A stretch of DNA of 64,000 nucleotides, taken from the sequence record NC_016163.1; one strand, written 5' to 3'. The notes below the pieces were generated by a model. The model was not told the origin of the DNA, did not search any database, and saw nothing but the letters and a program-made list of their open reading frames with translations. The translations under genes and the position numbers were made by a program. Position 1 is the first letter of the stretch, and each line of letters opens with the position of its first letter. This document shows, piece after piece, positions 29,958 through 38,706 of this stretch.

Positions 29958-31250
29958 ATGTCTAATACTGAGAATAACGTTAACGCAGCGGCAGCAATCT
30001 CCTCCAGCAGTGACATGATTGAATGTACTCACAAAACAATCATTCCGGTTCTGATTGATGCTGTTTATTCTCGTACACCAATTATTATTTGGGGTAATAC
30101 AGGAGTTGGCAAAACTGAGCTTCTTCATCAACTGGCTCGTATGTTTGGCATCGAACCCCGTGATCGTCAGCGCTATATCGACCAACGTATGAACTCCTGT
30201 GATGCACCGGATGTTCGTGGTTGCATTTTCCCTGATAAAGAAACAGGTCGTACCGTAGTATATCCACCAGCATGGATTCCTACTGCAAAAGATGGTCTGC
30301 CTCGCTTTATCGTTCTTGAAGAAATCAACACCATTCAGGACGATACCGTTCAGGCGGCACTGTATGAAATGTTACAAGAACGTCGTAACGGTGATATTGA
30401 TCTGGCAGATGAAGTGGCAATCTTTGCTACTGCAAACCTGGAAGAAGACAACGGCCCGACTGTAGAGTTAGCTGGCCCAGTTAAAAACCGCGTTAAGCAT
30501 ATTCGTCTACTTAACACTGTTGAATGCTGGTTGGAAATGGCTGAAGCTAATAACTATCATCCTTTCTTGACTGCATATATTCGCCGCTACGGTATGGAAA
30601 AATTGTATGCTCCGGATTTTGAAAAGAATGCTTTCCGTACTAACCGTACTTGGTCTAAAGTAAATCAGACCATTTCTAACCCACTTTATCAGGAAACACT
30701 TGGTAAAGAATGGGGTTACAAGCATATCGTTCCAGATTTCGTTTTACCGAAATTTGCAGCGGGTACTCCACTTCCAGTTCCAGACTATGCAGCTATTATT
30801 GCCAGTATCGGTACTACTATCGGTGCTTCTGGTGCTAACGAATTCAGTACTTTCGTTACCCATGCGCAGTCTGTTTTACCGCTGATGAAAATCTTTGATG
30901 AAGGTAATCTGATTCCAGAAAACCAGATTATTAATATCACTGACCACCAGTATTACGCATTGATTGATATGATGCGTCGTACTATGATTGATCGCCATGA
31001 AGCGGGTAAAGCCATCAATGATGTATTTATCCGTAACGTGCTTAATACAATCATGATTGGGGCTAAAAACTCTTCTTTGCTGTCCACTGAATTCCGTCAG
31101 GCTAATATGTTGCGTATTAATCAGGCGATGAAATCTCAGTTCACTGTTAAAGTTATGCAGTATCGTTCCCAACTCGGTCAAATTGGTGCGGATGCATGTG
31201 AGTACTTCAAACAAGCAGGTGCAGCACTAAGCGAAATGGCTGCAGCTTAA
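29958..31250 (+). CDS. MoxR-like AAA+ ATPase
   Basis: WGNTGVGKT (Walker A), IVLEEI (Walker B), FATAN (sensor I), NRV arginine finger. Confidence 0.9.
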   Translation: MSNTENNVNAAAAISSSSDMIECTHKTIIPVLIDAVYSRTPIIIWGNTGVGKTELLHQLARMFGIEPRDRQRYIDQRMNSCDAPDVRGCIFPDKETGRTVVYPPAWIPTAKDGLPRFIVLEEINTIQDDTVQAALYEMLQERRNGDIDLADEVAIFATANLEEDNGPTVELAGPVKNRVKHIRLLNTVECWLEMAEANNYHPFLTAYIRRYGMEKLYAPDFEKNAFRTNRTWSKVNQTISNPLYQETLGKEWGYKHIVPDFVLPKFAAGTPLPVPDYAAIIASIGTTIGASGANEFSTFVTHAQSVLPLMKIFDEGNLIPENQIINITDHQYYALIDMMRRTMIDRHEAGKAINDVFIRNVLNTIMIGAKNSSLLSTEFRQANMLRINQAMKSQFTVKVMQYRSQLGQIGADACEYFKQAGAALSEMAAA

Positions 31251-31324
31251 TTAATAAACGGGTAATGGGGTCTAATCCCATTACCCGATATTTATTTTTA
31301 CATTAAATAAAAATAAGGCTAAAA

Positions 31325-33160
31325 ATGAGTAACTCATCTAAAAGTGGTATTTTTCATAATCCTGTAACCATTTCAGAAATGGAATCAGACTTCGTTATAC
31401 AAACCGCTCTAAGAAACAATCTTGATCCTAGACAACTTTTAGTTTCTCATTTGCAGGAAAAAATCTCTGAAGCCGTTAAAGAGAATAAAATTGGTACAGA
31501 TGCTAAATGGGAACCTCATTATGCCCGTGTTTCAATTAGTCCTTTTACAATTGAAAATGAAGGTTTAGAAGAACTTCTTTCTGAAGTTCATGATTTCTAT
31601 CTGGAAAATGATTTTATTTTCCCAAGTGTATTAAGTAATGCTTTTGAAACACGTAAAAAAATCATGGACATTGCCAAAGCTAAAGTAAATAAGGCTGTAA
31701 TGGCTTTGTCTATTTACTATAACATTTTTACTCCAATCATGATGCTTCTTAAGAACCGCATTGACCCTAACTTCAATGCCGGAAAAACTTATGATTTCAT
31801 TATTGAGTTAGATGAAAACTTCAATACGATTGGTGAGCTTCGTTTCTACTCCCCAAACCTCGGTGTGCGAGCTTATACCGATTTTCGTAGTACTGCATAT
31901 AATGCGGAATGGGCAGCAAACGTCCGTCAAAGTACACTGAACGGTGTAGCTCTTCATGAAGTATATCACAACGTGTTGATGCATAATACTCGTGGTGAAC
32001 ATGATAAGGCTTATAAACCTATTCGTGATCTTCATGAAGAAATCGATCAGTTAGCTTTAACTAAATATACTACTGATGAAGGTAGTGTTCCTATGAGTCA
32101 ATGGGAAGCTGATGATCAGTATAAAGTTAAAGTACTTCAGGCCATGCGTAATATTCAAAACATGGCAATGGATAAACCGATTAATATCGCTATTCAAACA
32201 GCTTCTCAAAATGCCAGTTTCAATATTGGTAAGAAAATCTGTCTGGATCAGGTTATCGAATTCAATAAAGAATTTGATAAATATACTGATAACGGTCATA
32301 AGTTTGCTGATTTACCTTCTCCACTGGCAAACTATTTTGGTTCTGTAGTATATCCAGAGCGTGGTGATACTGACGGTAAAACCTCTGAAGAATGGTTTAC
32401 TATTGATAATACTGAAGAGAACATCAAGAAATATCTTGAATGGCCTTCTTTAGATGAACATGGTAATCAAACTGAAGAGAAAGCCGAATCTACTCGCCGT
32501 ACTGAAGTATTTGAACGTGCTATGCAATCTGTACGCGATAATGTTAAGAATGCTCCGGGAGGCCCAACTGATACATTCTTCCGTATTCTGAATGCTCTGG
32601 AAGCAATTCCAACATTTATTGATTGGCGTATGCTTCTTAAACGTTATATCAAATCTGGTATTAAGACTGAAAAAACTTGGCAACGTATTAACACTCGTAC
32701 TTTCGCTGCAGCTGGTCAAATTCGTCCTGCTCGAAAATCCGATGCGATTAAAGTAGTAATTGCTGGAGACACATCAGGATCCATGCTGGATCAGTTAGGT
32801 GATGTAGTAACACAAGTTGAGAAAATTGTCAAATCTTTTGGTAGCTACTATTTTACCTTCTTTGCAGTTGATGAAGGTATAACTTCCGAAGAAGTTTTCT
32901 CCAATAGTAAGAAATTTACTGTTGACCGTCTGGTACGCAACTTCAAAGGTGGTGGCGGTACAGATTTCAGAAGCTTCTTTAAAGAGCTGGATGAGCGCGG
33001 TAATCGTGAAACAGTTGTAATGGTTACTGATGGCTGTGCAACCATTCCAGAAGACAGACCGAAAGGCTATGATGTAATTTGGGTGGTTCGTGAATCCGAT
33101 TTCCGTTGGGCGGAAGAATACCTGAAATGGGGCAAGATTGTCGTCATGTCAGGTATCTAA
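31325..33160 (+). CDS. DUF2201-like metallopeptidase plus VWA domain protein
   Basis: ALHEVYHNVLMH (HExxH); DTSGSM MIDAS motif, GGGGTDF, MVTDG. Confidence 0.9.
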   Translation: MSNSSKSGIFHNPVTISEMESDFVIQTALRNNLDPRQLLVSHLQEKISEAVKENKIGTDAKWEPHYARVSISPFTIENEGLEELLSEVHDFYLENDFIFPSVLSNAFETRKKIMDIAKAKVNKAVMALSIYYNIFTPIMMLLKNRIDPNFNAGKTYDFIIELDENFNTIGELRFYSPNLGVRAYTDFRSTAYNAEWAANVRQSTLNGVALHEVYHNVLMHNTRGEHDKAYKPIRDLHEEIDQLALTKYTTDEGSVPMSQWEADDQYKVKVLQAMRNIQNMAMDKPINIAIQTASQNASFNIGKKICLDQVIEFNKEFDKYTDNGHKFADLPSPLANYFGSVVYPERGDTDGKTSEEWFTIDNTEENIKKYLEWPSLDEHGNQTEEKAESTRRTEVFERAMQSVRDNVKNAPGGPTDTFFRILNALEAIPTFIDWRMLLKRYIKSGIKTEKTWQRINTRTFAAAGQIRPARKSDAIKVVIAGDTSGSMLDQLGDVVTQVEKIVKSFGSYYFTFFAVDEGITSEEVFSNSKKFTVDRLVRNFKGGGGTDFRSFFKELDERGNRETVVMVTDGCATIPEDRPKGYDVIWVVRESDFRWAEEYLKWGKIVVMSGI

Positions 33161-33162
33161 TA

Positions 33163-33192
33163 GAAAAGAGTCCTTCGGGACTCTTTTTTTTT
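33163..33192 (+). terminator. intrinsic terminator with cUUCGg loop
   Basis: AAAAGAGTCC-TTCG-GGACTCTTTT plus T run. Confidence 0.9.
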
Positions 33193-33206
33193 ATTTAATA
33201 AATAAT

Positions 33207-33226
33207 GATATATTATTTTTATGAAT
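33207..33226 (+). promoter_or_regulatory. early-type promoter motif
   Basis: GATATATTATT-TTTA-TGAAT upstream of the membrane-protein/HigA operon. Confidence 0.65.
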
Positions 33227-33248
33227 AAACTAACACAAAGGTATTTAA

Positions 33249-33476
33249 ATGGATATTAAGCAGAAGTTTAAAAATGTACTAGATTTCTTAGAAGCCCCTA
33301 TTACTTTCAAAGTTAGTAGAGGGTTTTATTACTATATCTTAATTCTTATCCTAATGACTATCCTCTCATACACCTCTGGATTCTTTGATTCAGTTATTTC
33401 AATAGTTATATTCTTTGTAGTATTTTATTTCGACCAAGAACTCATCAAAAGAAGGGAAGCTAAGAAAGATGAATAA
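33249..33476 (+). CDS. small membrane protein (2 TM)
   Basis: Two hydrophobic segments. Confidence 0.75.
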   Translation: MDIKQKFKNVLDFLEAPITFKVSRGFYYYILILILMTILSYTSGFFDSVISIVIFFVVFYFDQELIKRREAKKDE

Positions 33477-34071
33477 TTTTACTTTATCTATTGATAGTGA
33501 TAAATTTGAAAAGAATATTAATGCTTATTTAAAATTTAGTATGAATAAGCTTTATGCTAATCTAGCTATATTATTTCTAAGTTCGATAGCATTTATCCTG
33601 TTTTCTGATAGATTTGAAGTACTACAGCATATTGTAGTAAGAATCTTATGGGGAGTAATCATGTTTAGAATGCTAATACGGATTCTTTACATGAATAGCT
33701 TTATCACGACAGTTTATAAGAAAAAGACAAAACTTATAAATAAGATCAAGAACTCCCATACGTCTTTTAATGTAAATACTTTAGCTAAGAGTAAAGAGCA
33801 CCTATATAAAAGCGTAATTAATAGACTAAGAGAAAATATTCAAACGCTAGTATTAGCTAAGAATAATTCAGATCTTACCACGTCATTTACTTGTAAAGTA
33901 GATGCATTAAGTGATTCATCAATTTCTATACTTTCTTTTGAGCTACATAGAAGTTATATACGTATAACAGATGGTAGAAACATTCTGGTAGTTGATCTTC
34001 CAGTTGTTAAATCAAAATATGAGGCTTTACAACCTCTTTCAATTTTACTACACTCAATTAAAGTAGATTAA
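33469..34071 (+). CDS. membrane protein (2 N-terminal TM)
   Basis: Two hydrophobic segments then a soluble domain; overlap with previous gene. Confidence 0.75.
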   Translation: MNNFTLSIDSDKFEKNINAYLKFSMNKLYANLAILFLSSIAFILFSDRFEVLQHIVVRILWGVIMFRMLIRILYMNSFITTVYKKKTKLINKIKNSHTSFNVNTLAKSKEHLYKSVINRLRENIQTLVLAKNNSDLTTSFTCKVDALSDSSISILSFELHRSYIRITDGRNILVVDLPVVKSKYEALQPLSILLHSIKVD

Positions 34072-34080
34072 GGACTTATC

Positions 34081-34473
34081 ATGCAGCTAACTTTACAAGA
34101 CCGACCACTTTCTCTCAGTGAAACTTTAGAAGCTCGTTTTAAGGAAAATGGTATCAATGCCAGGATGCTATCTTTCGCTATTAAAGAAAGTCAAAGTTAT
34201 ATAAGTGATCTTATGAATGGTAAAATATCACTTAGCTCTTCAATGGCTTTAAAATTATCAGTATTTTTTGAAACCACTCCTGACTATTGGTATCGGGTGG
34301 AATATAAATATAATCTTTACAAACAACGTAATGATAAAGTATTTGTAGATCAAACTATGAGAAATATTACTCCTATCTCTCAAGGATATAAAGAATTCGA
34401 TCCTACAAAATATGAAGATGATCGAGTTTATAAACCATTACACTTATCAAGTTCTCTCTATAGTGGATTATAA
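34081..34473 (+). CDS. higA: HigA-like XRE-HTH antitoxin (orphan, divergent copy)
   Basis: SQSYISDLMNGKISLSSSMALKLSVFFETTPDYW. Confidence 0.75.
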   Translation: MQLTLQDRPLSLSETLEARFKENGINARMLSFAIKESQSYISDLMNGKISLSSSMALKLSVFFETTPDYWYRVEYKYNLYKQRNDKVFVDQTMRNITPISQGYKEFDPTKYEDDRVYKPLHLSSSLYSGL

Positions 34474-34482
34474 GGAATACCA

Positions 34483-34797
34483 ATGACTGATACTATTCGA
34501 ATCCCAACTCATCCAGGAATTATTCTTAAAGAAGAATTTATGGATTCTCAACCTAAAATTACAGTTATTGAAATCTGTAAACGAACTAATATCTCAGCAT
34601 CATATCTTCGTCGATTTATCAAAGGTGCTGAAGAAATCACAACTAATGTAGCTATTTGTTTAGCTAAGATATTTAATACTACTCCTGATTTTTGGTTGAA
34701 TCTGAATACTCAGCATTATACTGCTAAGCTTTTAGCTGATAAAGGTTATTCGGAAAGATTGAATTCTATCGAACCATTTAACTTTATTCAGAGTTAA
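34483..34797 (+). CDS. higA: HigA/VapI-family antitoxin (orphan)
   Basis: PTHPGIILKEEFM..ITTNVAICLAKIFNTTPDFWLNLN, the classic HigA signature. Confidence 0.9.
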   Translation: MTDTIRIPTHPGIILKEEFMDSQPKITVIEICKRTNISASYLRRFIKGAEEITTNVAICLAKIFNTTPDFWLNLNTQHYTAKLLADKGYSERLNSIEPFNFIQS

Positions 34798-34902
34798 TTA
34801 ATTCCCCTAATAGTTAAAAGCTATTAGGGGATAATCTTTTTTTTTTATTTATATTTTAAATATATATTATAATAATGAATCCATATCTAATAAGGATAAG
34901 AA

Positions 34903-35166
34903 ATGTTAATTATTCATAATTTAAATATCCCATCTACTTCAGAAGAAGTTAATCAATATCTTAAACTTCATGGAGTGCATTGTGAAAATACTTTTAACCA
35001 TCCAAATAAATTAGCTATTTTATTGGCTGCTAAGTTACATGAGAGGATTGATGTTGATTTAGATAGAATCAATCCATACAACCAACATCATGAAAACCTT
35101 GCATGGAAAAAGTTTAATAAAACGTATGAATATATGATTTCTGTAATGAAATCCTTCAATTTTTAA
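34903..35166 (+). CDS. hypothetical protein
   Basis: 87 aa ORF, AAGGA RBS, early motif at 34861-34880. Confidence 0.75.
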   Translation: MLIIHNLNIPSTSEEVNQYLKLHGVHCENTFNHPNKLAILLAAKLHERIDVDLDRINPYNQHHENLAWKKFNKTYEYMISVMKSFNF

Positions 35167-35182
35167 AAAATTCGTTATAACA

Positions 35183-35195
35183 AACAAAGTTTTAG
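35183..35195 (+). promoter_or_regulatory. late-type promoter AACA-N6-TAG
   Basis: Exact motif upstream of gyrB. Confidence 0.65.
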
Positions 35196-35217
35196 AATTC
35201 CACAAGGAAATTTATAA

Positions 35218-36540
35218 ATGGTTAAGACTAAAAAAGTAGATATCGCTCCAGAAGATTCATATACTGGTAAGGATATTAAAGAATTACCATATCCAGTCAA
35301 TATTCAGACTCGTCCACAAATGTATGTGGGGGAAACTGATTCAACAGGTAAACTGACTTGTATCCGAGAAATTCTTAATAACTCAGTCGATGAATTCTTG
35401 GCTGGACATTGTAACCAAATCAATATTTATCGTTTGGATATCGACCACTATGTTATTGAAGATAACGGTCGTGGTGTTCCATTTGATAAACATGAGACTG
35501 GTAAAAATACTCTAGAAACAATCTTTGGCGTACTACATGCTGGTCGAAACTTTAAGAAAAAGACTGTATATAGTACTGGTCTTAACGGTGTTGGTGCGTC
35601 AGTAGTAAACGCATTATCTGAAGTATTCAAAGTTACTTCTCACCGTGGAAATGACGTAGGTATTATTGAATTCTCAGATGGTTACAAACAGAAAATCACT
35701 CTGTCTACCGTTACTAAACTCAAACTCAAATTCCAAAAGGGATTTGATAAGAAAGGTACTGGTGTAGAATTCAAATTTAATCCAGAGTTCTTTGAACCGG
35801 ATTCTGATTTAGATATCCAGGAAGTACTTGATTTAATCCGTAAAACTGCTTACATGGTAAGCGGATTAAAGCTTAAATTCGTGGATATGGTAGATTCTAA
35901 AAATAACGTAACTTTTGATTATGAGAATGGTGTTTCAGATCTCTTAGAAGAGATTAACCCAGCCTCTATTATCAAACCAGCGTATTTTAAACCTGTCACT
36001 ATTAATGAAACCAAAGTTGAAGTAAGTTTCAGCTTTAGTGAAAAATTTGATAGTGAAAATATTGAATCGTTCTGTAATACCATCCGTACTGGTGATGGCG
36101 GTGTACACGTTACAGGATTTAAACGTAGTTTCAGTCAAAAAGTTACCAATTTCATTAAAGAAAATGGTTTAACTAAAGAAAAGATTGAAAACAGTGACGT
36201 ATTTGTAGGCTTGAATGCAGTAGTATCTGTATTCGTATTCAATCCTAAATATTCTACTCAGACTAAGCAAAAACTTAGTAATACTGAAGTAGAAGGTCAT
36301 GTATTGCGAGCCATGAATAAATGGCTTGATGAATGGCTTGAAGCTAACCCTAAAGAAGTTAAGACTCTTGCTACTAAAATTGCACTTACTGCTAAATCTC
36401 GTATTGCTCAAAAGCGTGCTTTAGACAGTGTTAAGAAAGAGCAATCAGGTACATTCCTCACTACACTTGCTGCTCCAGAGAAGTTTACGGATTGTAACAG
36501 TGATGATCGAATGGAATGTGAATTATTCTTAGTTGAGGGT
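35218..36540 (+). CDS. gyrB: DNA gyrase subunit B, exon 1
   Basis: RPQMYVG, EILNNSVDE, DNGRGVP, GLNGVGASVVNALS GHKL motifs; ends ELFLVEG. Confidence 0.95.
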
Positions 36541-37635
36541 TAAAATGGCTCTCATTAAACCTCTTTAATTGTCTGGAAAACCTTAATTACCGCGAATTAA
36601 GACAACCAGCAGCGAAGCTTATGGTATTAACACCTATAAAGGATTATAGGATGCATAAGAACGTTCAACGACTATCGAAAGTACTTATGATAATTCATAG
36701 GGTAAATGAGTAGAGTAGCGCCAAGTGGTAGGTATCATAATGATAATAGTTATGAATAAATCCTTTAAAGCGAAACGGGAGGCAAAGGATTGAAGATATA
36801 GTCTGATCTGCATGGTGACATGTAGAGTTAGTTGAAAGTGATTTCTTAACAAAATCTTAGTATCTAAGAGGATTTAATTTATGCCAGTTAAGAAAACACA
36901 TGCACAATTCGTAAAAGAAGTTGAATTAAGATTTGGAAAAGAATATACAGTTTTAGGGGAGTATAAAAACACTCATACTCCAATAAAACTGCGGCATAAT
37001 AAATGTGGTAATATATGGGAAACTACTGCTCCATATGATTTACTAAAACCAAAACCTAATGGTTGTAAATTATGTGCAATTAATAGATCATTTCCATTGA
37101 CTACTAAAGAATTTTCAGTTAAACTAAATGCAATTCATAATAATTCTTATAAAGTTCTGCAAGAATATAAGAATAATAAAACCAAAATTTTAGTTCGCCA
37201 TAATTGCGGATATGAATTTATGGTTAAACCGAATAGCATTCTAACAGAAAAGTTTAATTGCCAATCATGCCAAAAAACAAATTCAGTAATAAGTGATTCA
37301 ATTGCTGAATTTCTTAATGAAGAAAATCTTAATTTCATCCAAGAAAAAAAGTTTAAATGGTTAAAATATGAATCTCTATTATCTATAGATTTCTATCTGC
37401 CAGATTTTAAAATTGGTATAGAAGCTGATGGAGAACAACACTACATTCCTAAACGTGGTGGAATTAAAGAGTTTGAAAAAACTCTTAAGAGAGATTTGAT
37501 CAAATTTAAACTTTGTAAAGAACATGGTATAGAAATACTGAGAATACCTAGTTTTTTAACTAAAAAAGAAATTTCTTTGTATCTTGGAAAACTTCTTTTA
37601 GAAAGAAATGTCTTTCAACTAGATTAACACAAATG
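36541..37635 (+). mobile_element. group I intron in gyrB (1095 nt)
   Basis: Exon ends in U, intron ends in G; P AATTGTCTGGAAA, Q AACCAGCAGC, R GTTCAACGACTA (36663), S AAGATATAGTC (36793); splicing restores VEG-DSAGG. Confidence 0.93.
36881..37627 (+). CDS. intron-encoded homing endonuclease (Cys-rich repeats plus DUF559/Vsr-like nuclease)
   Basis: HNKCG/CKLC/HNCG/CQSC; IDFYLP..IEADGEQH..D--K---C---GIEILRIP. Confidence 0.85.
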   Translation: MPVKKTHAQFVKEVELRFGKEYTVLGEYKNTHTPIKLRHNKCGNIWETTAPYDLLKPKPNGCKLCAINRSFPLTTKEFSVKLNAIHNNSYKVLQEYKNNKTKILVRHNCGYEFMVKPNSILTEKFNCQSCQKTNSVISDSIAEFLNEENLNFIQEKKFKWLKYESLLSIDFYLPDFKIGIEADGEQHYIPKRGGIKEFEKTLKRDLIKFKLCKEHGIEILRIPSFLTKKEISLYLGKLLLERNVFQLD

Positions 37636-38706
37636 GATTCAGCGGGTGGCTCAATAAAACAAGTACTTGATAGAGAAACTCAAGCAGTATATAAGCTTAA
37701 GGGTAAACCTAAAAATACTCTTAAAGATGGTGTAGAAGACCTTTACAAGAATAAAGAAACTGATGATATCATTTCTATTCTACGTTGTGGTATGGGCCGT
37801 AACTACTCTTCAGAGAAACTTCGTTTTGGTAAGATCATTCAGTTGTGTGACTCCGACTCAGATGGTAAACACATTGAAATGCTATTATCCACATTGTTTT
37901 CTAACCATTTCCGCCCATTAGTTGCTGAAGGGCGTGTGTATATTTGTCTTTCTCCTCTCTATCGTGTTATTCGTTCAGGTGTACCACCAGTATACTTCAA
38001 GAATGACAAAGAACTTGAGAGTTTCTTATCAAATCAGCTGGCAGAGGATTTTGCCTTTAAAAATGCTGCTGGTAAGAAAATGAATGAGAAAAACACCTCT
38101 AATTTGATTTCATTAATTCGTAAATATCGTAATGAGATTAATAAAGTAGCTAAAAAGTATCATAGTGATTCTAAACGAATTGAAGCTGTATTCGTAAATA
38201 ATTATGATGCTGAAGAAGGATGGTTTGATTTTGAGTTGGAAGTCGAAGAACATAAGAATGAAAGTATCACTATTAAAGGATTCTACGAATTCGATAACGG
38301 TGAATCTTATGTATACCTGAACGTACCAGCTATTGAAACATTCTTAGAAGAAATTGAGAATCTTCAAGAGTTATTAGCAGAGATTCATGAAAAGTTCTTT
38401 GTATTTGACAAGAAAAATAATCCTATTGAACGAGAAACAATGATTGAATCTGTTGATTTCTTAATTGATAAGGTAACTAAATCTTGTACAATTACCCGTT
38501 ATAAAGGATTGGGAGAGTCTAATCCAGATGACCTTAAAGAAATCTGTCTTGACCCTAAGAATCGCACCTTAATTCAAATCAAGATTGGTAGCGAGGAAGA
38601 AGTTAAAGAAGTTCTTGAGAACTATATGTTAGACAAGAACGTGGAATATCGTCAGAAATTCCTGCTTGAACACTTCGACCAGAATCTGCTAGAATCAGAT
38701 ATCTAA
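37636..38706 (+). CDS. gyrB: DNA gyrase subunit B, exon 2 (spliced product 797 aa)
   Basis: DSAGGS, LKGK, CDSDSDGKHI toprim, RYKGLGE; insertion within the toprim region. Confidence 0.95.
   Translation, partial: DSAGGSIKQVLDRETQAVYKLKGKPKNTLKDGVEDLYKNKETDDIISILRCGMGRNYSSEKLRFGKIIQLCDSDSDGKHIEMLLSTLFSNHFRPLVAEGRVYICLSPLYRVIRSGVPPVYFKNDKELESFLSNQLAEDFAFKNAAGKKMNEKNTSNLISLIRKYRNEINKVAKKYHSDSKRIEAVFVNNYDAEEGWFDFELEVEEHKNESITIKGFYEFDNGESYVYLNVPAIETFLEEIENLQELLAEIHEKFFVFDKKNNPIERETMIESVDFLIDKVTKSCTITRYKGLGESNPDDLKEICLDPKNRTLIQIKIGSEEEVKEVLENYMLDKNVEYRQKFLLEHFDQNLLESDI

Follow-up and report, generated by a model that had tools for sequence, protein, structure and literature searches.

Toxin-less HigA-like genes in the Yersinia jumbo phage phiR1-37 form an asymmetric tandem pair with a possible role as trans-acting antitoxins

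The terminal 64 kb of the Yersinia phage phiR1-37 record (AJ972879 / NC_016163, 262,391 bp), a stretch of 64,000 nucleotides (nt) referred to here as the window, contains a short unit in which two genes for helix-turn-helix (HTH) proteins resembling HigA antitoxins, g308 and g309, follow each other without a HigB toxin gene. From window position 33000 to 35300, the window is 100% identical to the phage record. The unit consists of a promoter, the genes g306, g307, g308 and g309, and a terminator, with all four genes on the + strand (TM, transmembrane; aa, amino acids):

33203..33227, + strand: phage promoter ahead of g306-g309, of the A/dU-rich type that is generic in phiR1-37, annotated as "verified by RNA-seq" (RNA sequencing)
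33249..33476, + strand: g306, 75 aa, matching no family, with two TM helices and a charged C-terminus
33469..34071, + strand: g307, 200-aa basic membrane protein with two TM helices and an alpha/beta C-domain, a lineage-specific orphan open reading frame (ORFan)
34081..34473, + strand: g308, 130 aa, diverged HigA-like protein with a five-helix XRE core and a predicted-disordered tail, assigned by HTH_3 and fold
34483..34797, + strand: g309, 104 aa, complete HigA-family protein, assigned by TIGR02607 above cut-off, PHROG 1381 and sequence matches in the PDB
34803..34831, + strand: intrinsic terminator ending the unit, 13-bp stem, 3-nt loop and T-run, annotated as Rho-independent

An earlier interpretation of this locus, made from the letters of the DNA without database searches (the sequence-only reading), had described two consecutive HigA-like HTH genes in an early operon, preceded by two membrane-protein genes and closed by a terminator, and had proposed that they counteract host toxin-antitoxin defence. 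The observation is real and its coordinates are right: g308 and g309 are consecutive on the + strand, g306 (two TM helices) and g307 (two TM helices plus a soluble domain) lie upstream, and a hairpin with a T-run ends the unit. The motifs that had been quoted for the two proteins are present as well, although in reverse, the actual order being g308 then g309. The unit was mis-described in part, since it is late rather than early and its two HigA-like copies are not equivalent. The open reading frames (ORFs) of g306 and g307 overlap by 8 nt, and composition is phage-like (29.6% GC). Furthermore, g308 and g309 share the same start layout (34060-34487), in which the stop codon of the gene before is fused with a TAAGGA ribosome site, followed by 7 bases and ATG, an arrangement that suggests coupled translation. 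It should be noted that both genes are already labelled as "antidote" proteins in the database record and are listed under "Toxin-antidote" in the published RNA-seq table, so that the bare observation of two HigA-like genes is not new. New from this analysis are the recurrence of toxin-less HigA genes in jumbo phages and the asymmetry of the tandem pair.

Within the XRE HTH proteins, g308 and g309 fall into the HigA (HigA/VapI/GraA) branch. The NCBIfam model for HigA, TIGR02607 (curated cut-off 47.7 bits), is the sole NCBIfam match for either of them and is reached above the cut-off by g309 (55.5 bits, E 3.7e-15) and below it by g308 (38.7 bits). The converse holds for Pfam HTH_3, to which g308 is assigned (5.7e-8, 33.1 bits against a cut-off of 23) and for which g309 scores slightly below the cut-off, while PHROG 1381, "plasmid antitoxin with HTH domain", matches both (g308, 1.3e-11; g309, 1.3e-21). 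The nearest PDB sequences are VapI (3TRB, 8.8e-12), YbaQ (2EBY), Pseudomonas aeruginosa HigA (7CSV) and GraA (6F8S) for g309, and GraA and Proteus HigA for g308. Membership in the fold was assessed for g308 by an AlphaFold2 model with Foldseek and for g309 by sequence alone. In the g308 model, the five-helix core (aa 12-84) has a predicted local distance difference test score (pLDDT) above 90 and the tail one below 60, and the best 40 Foldseek matches in the PDB are all HigA, GraA, VapI or YbaQ, with target template modelling scores of 0.70-0.83. The g309 sequence carries an N-terminal HPG motif, TTPDFW and a basic recognition helix with Arg43-Arg44. Over 50 aa, the two proteins have 30% identity to one another. 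HigA-like proteins of other jumbo phages resemble each of them more closely than its neighbour does, and a recent tandem duplication was therefore rejected; g308 and g309 are old paralogues or separate acquisitions.

The toxin partner of this HigA branch was defined from the 80 closest bacterial loci (31-46% identity). Directly upstream of the HigA-like gene, 52 of these 80 carry an ORF of 92-135 aa; these ORFs form one family, and six that were sampled correspond to the Pfam family HigB-like_toxin (PF05015). A profile built from these 52 HigB neighbours recovered HigB in 67/80 (84%) bacterial loci and, likewise, in 67/80 viral loci from IMG/VR, where the PF05015 gene sits directly upstream of the HigA-like gene. 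Because of this regular upstream position in bacterial and viral relatives, the HigA family is considered to be functionally tied to HigB. When the same profile was run against the phiR1-37 genome, the best E value over 2,319 six-frame segments was 0.52, and against the window and two relatives it was 0.18. The statement of the sequence-only reading that no HigB lies nearby was thus confirmed and extended, with none found by this profile in the cassette formed by the four genes, in the window, in the whole genome or in the relatives. The same reading had named a cognate toxin elsewhere in the genome as evidence to the contrary; this was looked at, and the 262,391-bp genome holds no PF05015-type HigB. 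Neither the annotation of phiR1-37 nor the immediate neighbours of the pair revealed a toxin of another family, the genome-wide scan having covered the PF05015 type, and there is no further HigA-like copy in the genome. Orphan status is therefore confirmed for the toxin family, PF05015 HigB, that partners this HigA branch.

The absence of the toxin is a recurrent feature of large phages. A g309-like gene was found in 63 phage records, in which jumbo phages infecting Erwinia, Klebsiella and Serratia are frequent, while HigB was detectable by BLAST in only 5 phage records. HigB was present in 67/75 other viral contigs and in 0/9 loci from contigs or genomes of at least 150 kb (Fisher p = 7e-8), namely phiR1-37, the contigs L099, L100, L102 and L165, Klebsiella phages Miami and FBKp24, Erwinia phage AH04 and Raoultella phage VB_ZK_P1. 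Counted by lineage, HigB occurs in 0/6 jumbo lineages (p = 9e-6). Toxin-less HigA genes thus recur in at least six jumbo-phage lineages, in gene contexts that differ from one another, in which no recognisable toxin and no g306- or g307-like neighbour was seen. A second tandem pair without toxin was found in the 295-kb contig L165 (IMGVR_UViG_3300048854_000232; 2034-2779), whose ORFs encode 113 and 134 aa; here, too, the upstream copy is the more divergent at toxin-contact columns (7/10 matched versus 9/10), and not at other conserved columns. The HigA-like protein of FBKp24 has 240 aa, including an extra N-terminal part.

No close relative of phiR1-37 has been sequenced, as far as 50,697 phage records show. 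In metagenomic contigs, g305 and g310 enclose the same four genes in at least three further lineages (75, 197-200, 130 and 104-109 aa), and the four-gene cassette is intact in all relatives found (3-4 lineages); in contig L006, a later start for g307 was merely chosen by the gene caller, and the gene is intact. When g310 and g305 were used to scan viral and metagenome contigs, no useful relatives were added. Identity to g309 is about 93-95% in L007/L008, 82% in L006 and 49% in L094/L096, and g306 is 51-55% identical to its counterparts. The ratio of nonsynonymous to synonymous substitution rates (dN/dS) is 0.18-0.30 for g306, 0.09-0.21 for g307 and 0.13-0.27 for g308/g309 at dS up to 0.7. With overall values of 0.09-0.30 compared to 0.00-0.09 for the neighbouring genes, the cassette is under purifying selection, though a looser one than its surroundings.

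The sequence-only reading had suggested that the two copies may differ in specificity. They are non-equivalent in docking face, recognition helix and tail. The GraTA paper gives the GraA residues contacting the toxin as R7, I9, E13, I14, E18, F19, M23, L63, D64, T66, F69, N72 and L73. These positions, mapped via a HMMER alignment, fall on the columns that are most conserved among HigAs; in the 134 HigB-paired HigAs in which they were scored, ten of them reach a conservation of at least 80%. Of these ten docking columns, 8-9 are matched by g309, 4-6 by g308 and 8-10 by most of the jumbo-phage orphans, and at 33 other conserved columns g309 matches 22-24 and g308 19-21. As judged from these alignments, the docking face of g309 appears compatible with toxin docking, which is not proof of it. 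A log-odds hint that g309 had selectively retained the docking columns proved to be confounded, and a fairer control with other conserved columns removed most of it. Departures of g308 from the HigA signature at T15, R19, R72 and V73 are fixed in its lineages, and two of them (R19 and R72) place arginine replacements on its docking face.

The recognition helices differ as well. That of g309 carries Arg43-Arg44 and Lys47, and its Arg aligned with Arg40 of the Proteus HigA (PvHigA), the only base-specific contact of that protein, is invariant in three lineages, while the first half of the helix varies among lineages. The recognition helix of g308 is non-basic and different in every lineage. Across the family, Arg or Lys occupies column 40 (g308 numbering) in about 90% of the 134 paired HigAs and in 0/14 phage orphans, of which 10/14 have Arg or Lys at column 43, the position of PvHigA Arg40, a shared shift in the DNA-reading helix. 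The tail of g308 (aa ~95-130, 35 aa) combines low model confidence with invariant residues and several aromatic ones; it is conserved, aromatic-rich and predicted to be disordered. Because four of its docking columns depart from the signature and its recognition helix is unconserved and non-basic, g308 probably neither serves as a second canonical antitoxin nor binds an operator.

Regarding expression, the early operon of the sequence-only reading was contradicted, and its early promoter was not confirmed. The published RNA-seq table assigns g306 to the MIDDLE class and g307-g309 to the LATE class, and the promoter is generic. Late genes of phiR1-37 peak at 35-49 min according to the RNA-seq paper, and transcripts of g308 (189/453/935 reads) and g309 (78/204/468) climb until then, staying in the hundreds compared to approximately 130,000 reads for the adjoining g305. 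Counts for g306 are very low, 10-30x below those of the downstream g307, which suggests an internal start or differential stability. The promoter stretch is 90% conserved in an alignment of 5 relatives. No operator of its own was seen at the promoter, either among inverted repeats in and around the unit or in the promoter alignment of the five relatives, which shows the generic promoter only; AT-rich palindromes in and around the unit and sigma-70-like matches in its region occur at chance level. It has been reported that early and late promoters of phiR1-37 do not differ in sequence, for which the RNA-seq authors invoke transcription factors, and that phage transcripts broadly replace host transcripts during infection.

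The two upstream genes were searched for relatives, too. Two helices at aa ~30-74 of g307 are followed by a basic soluble domain, and an exhaustive HMMER search of 1.84 billion representatives returned only two true relatives, both on phiR1-37-like contigs. For this protein, there is no sequence match in the PDB, no family match (Pfam, PHROG, NCBIfam) and no PADLOC match, and its model (pLDDT 74.8) has no fold match in the PDB or BFVD save itself. The idea that g307 is a hidden toxin was rejected on the lack of a sequence, fold or PADLOC match and on an hhalign probability of 0.5% against the HigB profile; g307 is a lineage-specific membrane ORFan and not a HigB/RelE homologue. Likewise, g306 matches no family (Pfam, PHROG, NCBIfam) and nothing in PADLOC. 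At 75 aa, with its two TM helices and highly charged C-terminus, it is shaped like a class II holin, and the phiR1-37 record annotates no holin. In the toxicity screen published for phiR1-37 proteins, g306-g310 go unmentioned.

The reading that we favour, tentatively and at well under an even chance, is that g309 is a trans-acting antitoxin, and we rank it just above a role of the pair as transcription regulators. The conserved docking face of g309, comprising the N-terminal HPG segment with helix 1 and the TTPDFW-LNL start of helix 5, would bind host HigB-type ribosome-dependent mRNases, which would be freed when labile host antitoxins decay as phage transcripts replace host transcripts. By steric hindrance, g309 would hold these toxins off the ribosome, in the way that GraA blocks GraT according to the GraTA paper. 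Its neighbour g308, as a degenerate paralogue, would have lost both the reading of DNA and the docking of canonical HigB; it would probably act by protein contacts of its conserved disordered tail and arginine-substituted face, modulating g309 or engaging some other partner. Any binding to a host toxin is inferred; several findings are in line with it. Both genes encode antitoxin homologues that are carried by a phage without the toxin and are kept by selection, as expected for orphan counter-defence genes; orphan antitoxin-like genes of phages, directed against DarTG and RnlAB, form an established class of counter-defence, and a HigBAC system aborts lambda infection. The rise of g308 and g309 expression late in infection fits toxins freed as host antitoxins decay, and HigBA is reported to be strain-variable in Yersinia enterocolitica, only some strains having it. 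Of the counter-defence proposal of the sequence-only reading, the family and the toxin-less state are retained, along with conservation and the docking residues of g309; the early expression is dropped, and g308 is an improbable canonical antitoxin.

Several observations weigh against this antitoxin reading. Part of the comparison set was collected with a pattern spanning columns 63-71, so that conservation there is inflated, and the docking match of g309 is not significantly better than its match at the other conserved columns. The docking columns double as a structural hallmark of the fold and are kept by Escherichia coli YbaQ, too. At column 14, where 87% of the paired HigAs have Glu or Asp, g309 has Ile, and its invariant recognition-helix Arg would be unneeded for pure sequestration. 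Identity to bacterial HigA proteins is at most 46% (closest bacterial loci 31-46%) and to plasmid HigA at most 38%, with no Enterobacterales among the best 80 bacterial loci; on the same values, a recent capture from the host is unsupported. Moreover, the transcript levels of g308 and g309 are low, and type II toxin-antitoxin pairs are usually specific.

The main alternative, that g309, with or without g308, is a plain transcription factor that binds phage or host operators for Aca-like auto-repression or tuning of temporal classes and does not bind toxins, fits the data about as well as counter-defence, and we regard it as possible, if doubtful. HigA proteins are operator-binding repressors, and P. 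aeruginosa HigA also controls other promoters. The basic recognition helix of g309, the invariance of its PvHigA Arg40 equivalent and the Arg or Lys found there in most jumbo-phage orphans agree with such a function, as do the position of the HTH genes at the 3' end of an ORFan unit (Aca1 being antitoxin-like in structure), the low transcript levels typical of regulators, and the uniformity of phiR1-37 promoters across early and late genes. However, no operator-like conserved palindrome was found beyond the generic promoter, the recognition helix varies between lineages (the first half in g309, all of g308), and the orphan genes of other jumbo phages lie in unrelated contexts. Furthermore, this explanation leaves unaccounted for why a HigB-linked subfamily recurs in jumbo phages and always without the toxin. 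If the two proteins were only regulators, g308 and g309 would be candidates for the missing factors behind the temporal classes that phiR1-37 maintains despite its uniform promoters.

It is also conceivable, though unlikely in our estimation, that the cassette is a self-contained module in which g307, perhaps with g306, is a membrane effector (in lysis timing, exclusion or a toxin-like role) that is restrained by the tail of g308, with g309 as the DNA-binding regulator in a three-part arrangement. The effector-first order resembles that of higBA, the genes are tightly packed through the g306/g307 overlap and the TAAGGA sites fused to preceding stops, and the four occur together in every relative found; the degenerate HTH and conserved disordered tail of g308 correspond to the usual build of a type II antitoxin, while g309 keeps the DNA-reading Arg. 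Late expression and the holin-like shape of g306 in a phage without an annotated holin would also fit. However, neither a toxin nor any other protein resembles g307 in sequence or fold, the orphan HigA genes of other jumbo phages lack g306/g307-like neighbours, and shared synteny says little in these close relatives, in which the whole region is collinear. The read difference between g306 and g307 is at odds with a single simple transcript as well. Finally, the idea that the pair is what remains of a captured higBA module, now decaying and without function, would account for the absent toxin and for the strong divergence of g308 from the family, but it is disfavoured because of purifying selection and is very improbable: g308 and g309 are intact in all lineages at the dN/dS values given above, invariant motifs persist, the g308 tail included, the composition is phage-like and transcripts are detected.

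Comparison with characterised systems places the pair further. The solved structures of the HigA family are those of Pseudomonas putida GraA (6F8H/6F8S), Coxiella burnetii VapI (3TRB), P. aeruginosa HigA (6JPI/7CSV) and Proteus vulgaris HigA (4MCT/6CHV). With these, g308 and g309 share the five-helix XRE fold, a long dimerising helix 5, an N-terminal (H)PG segment and the TTP(D/E)FW motif, and g309 keeps most GraT-contact positions and the Arg equivalent to PvHigA Arg40. They differ from the solved members in lacking a HigB partner gene, in an identity of at most 26% to any of them and in being carried by a strictly lytic jumbo phage; g308 departs from GraA-type antitoxins in its R19/R72/T15 docking face, its non-basic recognition helix and its 35-aa disordered tail. 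The adjacent PF05015 HigB gene that a higBA module has in its operon is absent from g306-g309. The same fold and hallmark motifs are found in YbaQ (2EBY), the second-best match to g309 by sequence and to the g308 model by fold, which differs in being a bacterial chromosomal, single-copy HigA-like protein and which we take to be an orphan.

Among phage proteins, T4 Dmd (against RnlA/LsoA) and AdfN/AdfM (against DarTG) are likewise antitoxin relatives or mimics carried without the toxin, and act on host toxin-antitoxin defence. Unlike g308 and g309, which are known from sequence, they have been demonstrated experimentally and concern other toxin families, and AdfN/AdfM are enzymatic. Aca repressors such as Aca1 are also small antitoxin-like HTH dimers, and their genes stand last in phage operons made up of small novel genes; however, Aca operons have strong early promoters with inverted-repeat operators, whereas g306-g309 are expressed late and weakly, without an operator having been found, and in place of upstream anti-defence genes the unit has the membrane ORFans g306 and g307, which match no family and nothing in PADLOC. 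In the HigBAC system, HigA is an HTH antitoxin with a C-terminal disordered extension containing conserved aromatics (ChAD), as in the g308 tail. This likeness is one of build only, since the ChAD has 96 aa compared to about 35 aa in g308 and the phage has no SecB-like chaperone or toxin gene.

Beyond the cassette, the neighbouring genes showed further features. Downstream, g310 (34903-35166, 87 aa), which has its own promoter, is the most conserved small gene of this region (87-100% identical, dN/dS ≤0.05), with almost no reads (4-14) and no family match. The following topoisomerase II (35218-38706) is split into g311 and g314, with the endonuclease-like g313 and the tiny g312 between them. 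In L006 and L007, topoisomerase II is encoded by a single 798-aa gene, whereas that of the more distant L094 is split; such variation in presence and absence is typical of a homing-endonuclease insertion. Upstream, g304 (a MoxR-like AAA_5 ATPase) and g305 (a DUF2201 VWA-like protein with a metallopeptidase-like N-domain) form a pair at 29958-33160; the RNA-seq paper counts g304 among the genes with the highest read numbers, and g305 has the approximately 130,000 reads mentioned above. The RefSeq label of g305, "HNH endonuclease", stems from a PHROG name and receives no support from Pfam.

Returning to the antitoxin reading, a broader version of it would hold that jumbo phages as a class carry toxin-less HigA genes, be they single, tandem or fused, as a general shield against HigB/RelE abortive infection through long infection cycles, and that in tandem pairs such as g308/g309 the degenerate upstream copy has been re-purposed, via its tail and arginine face, for a second host component, e.g., another toxin or a SecB-like chaperone of the toxin-antitoxin-chaperone (TAC) type. 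We consider this extension improbable as it stands. Whether the pair represents antitoxins or regulators, the database label "plasmid antitoxin" should not be taken as a demonstrated function. If g309-type proteins do neutralise HigB-family toxins, they would be the first HigA-type counter-defence of phages, and this would account for the repeated retention, by large lytic phages, of an "addiction-module" gene that is useless to them for addiction. The antitoxin reading bears on the question of which toxin-antitoxin systems truly limit jumbo phages, and the asymmetric pair, with one complete and one degenerate copy, offers a concrete lead for structural work.

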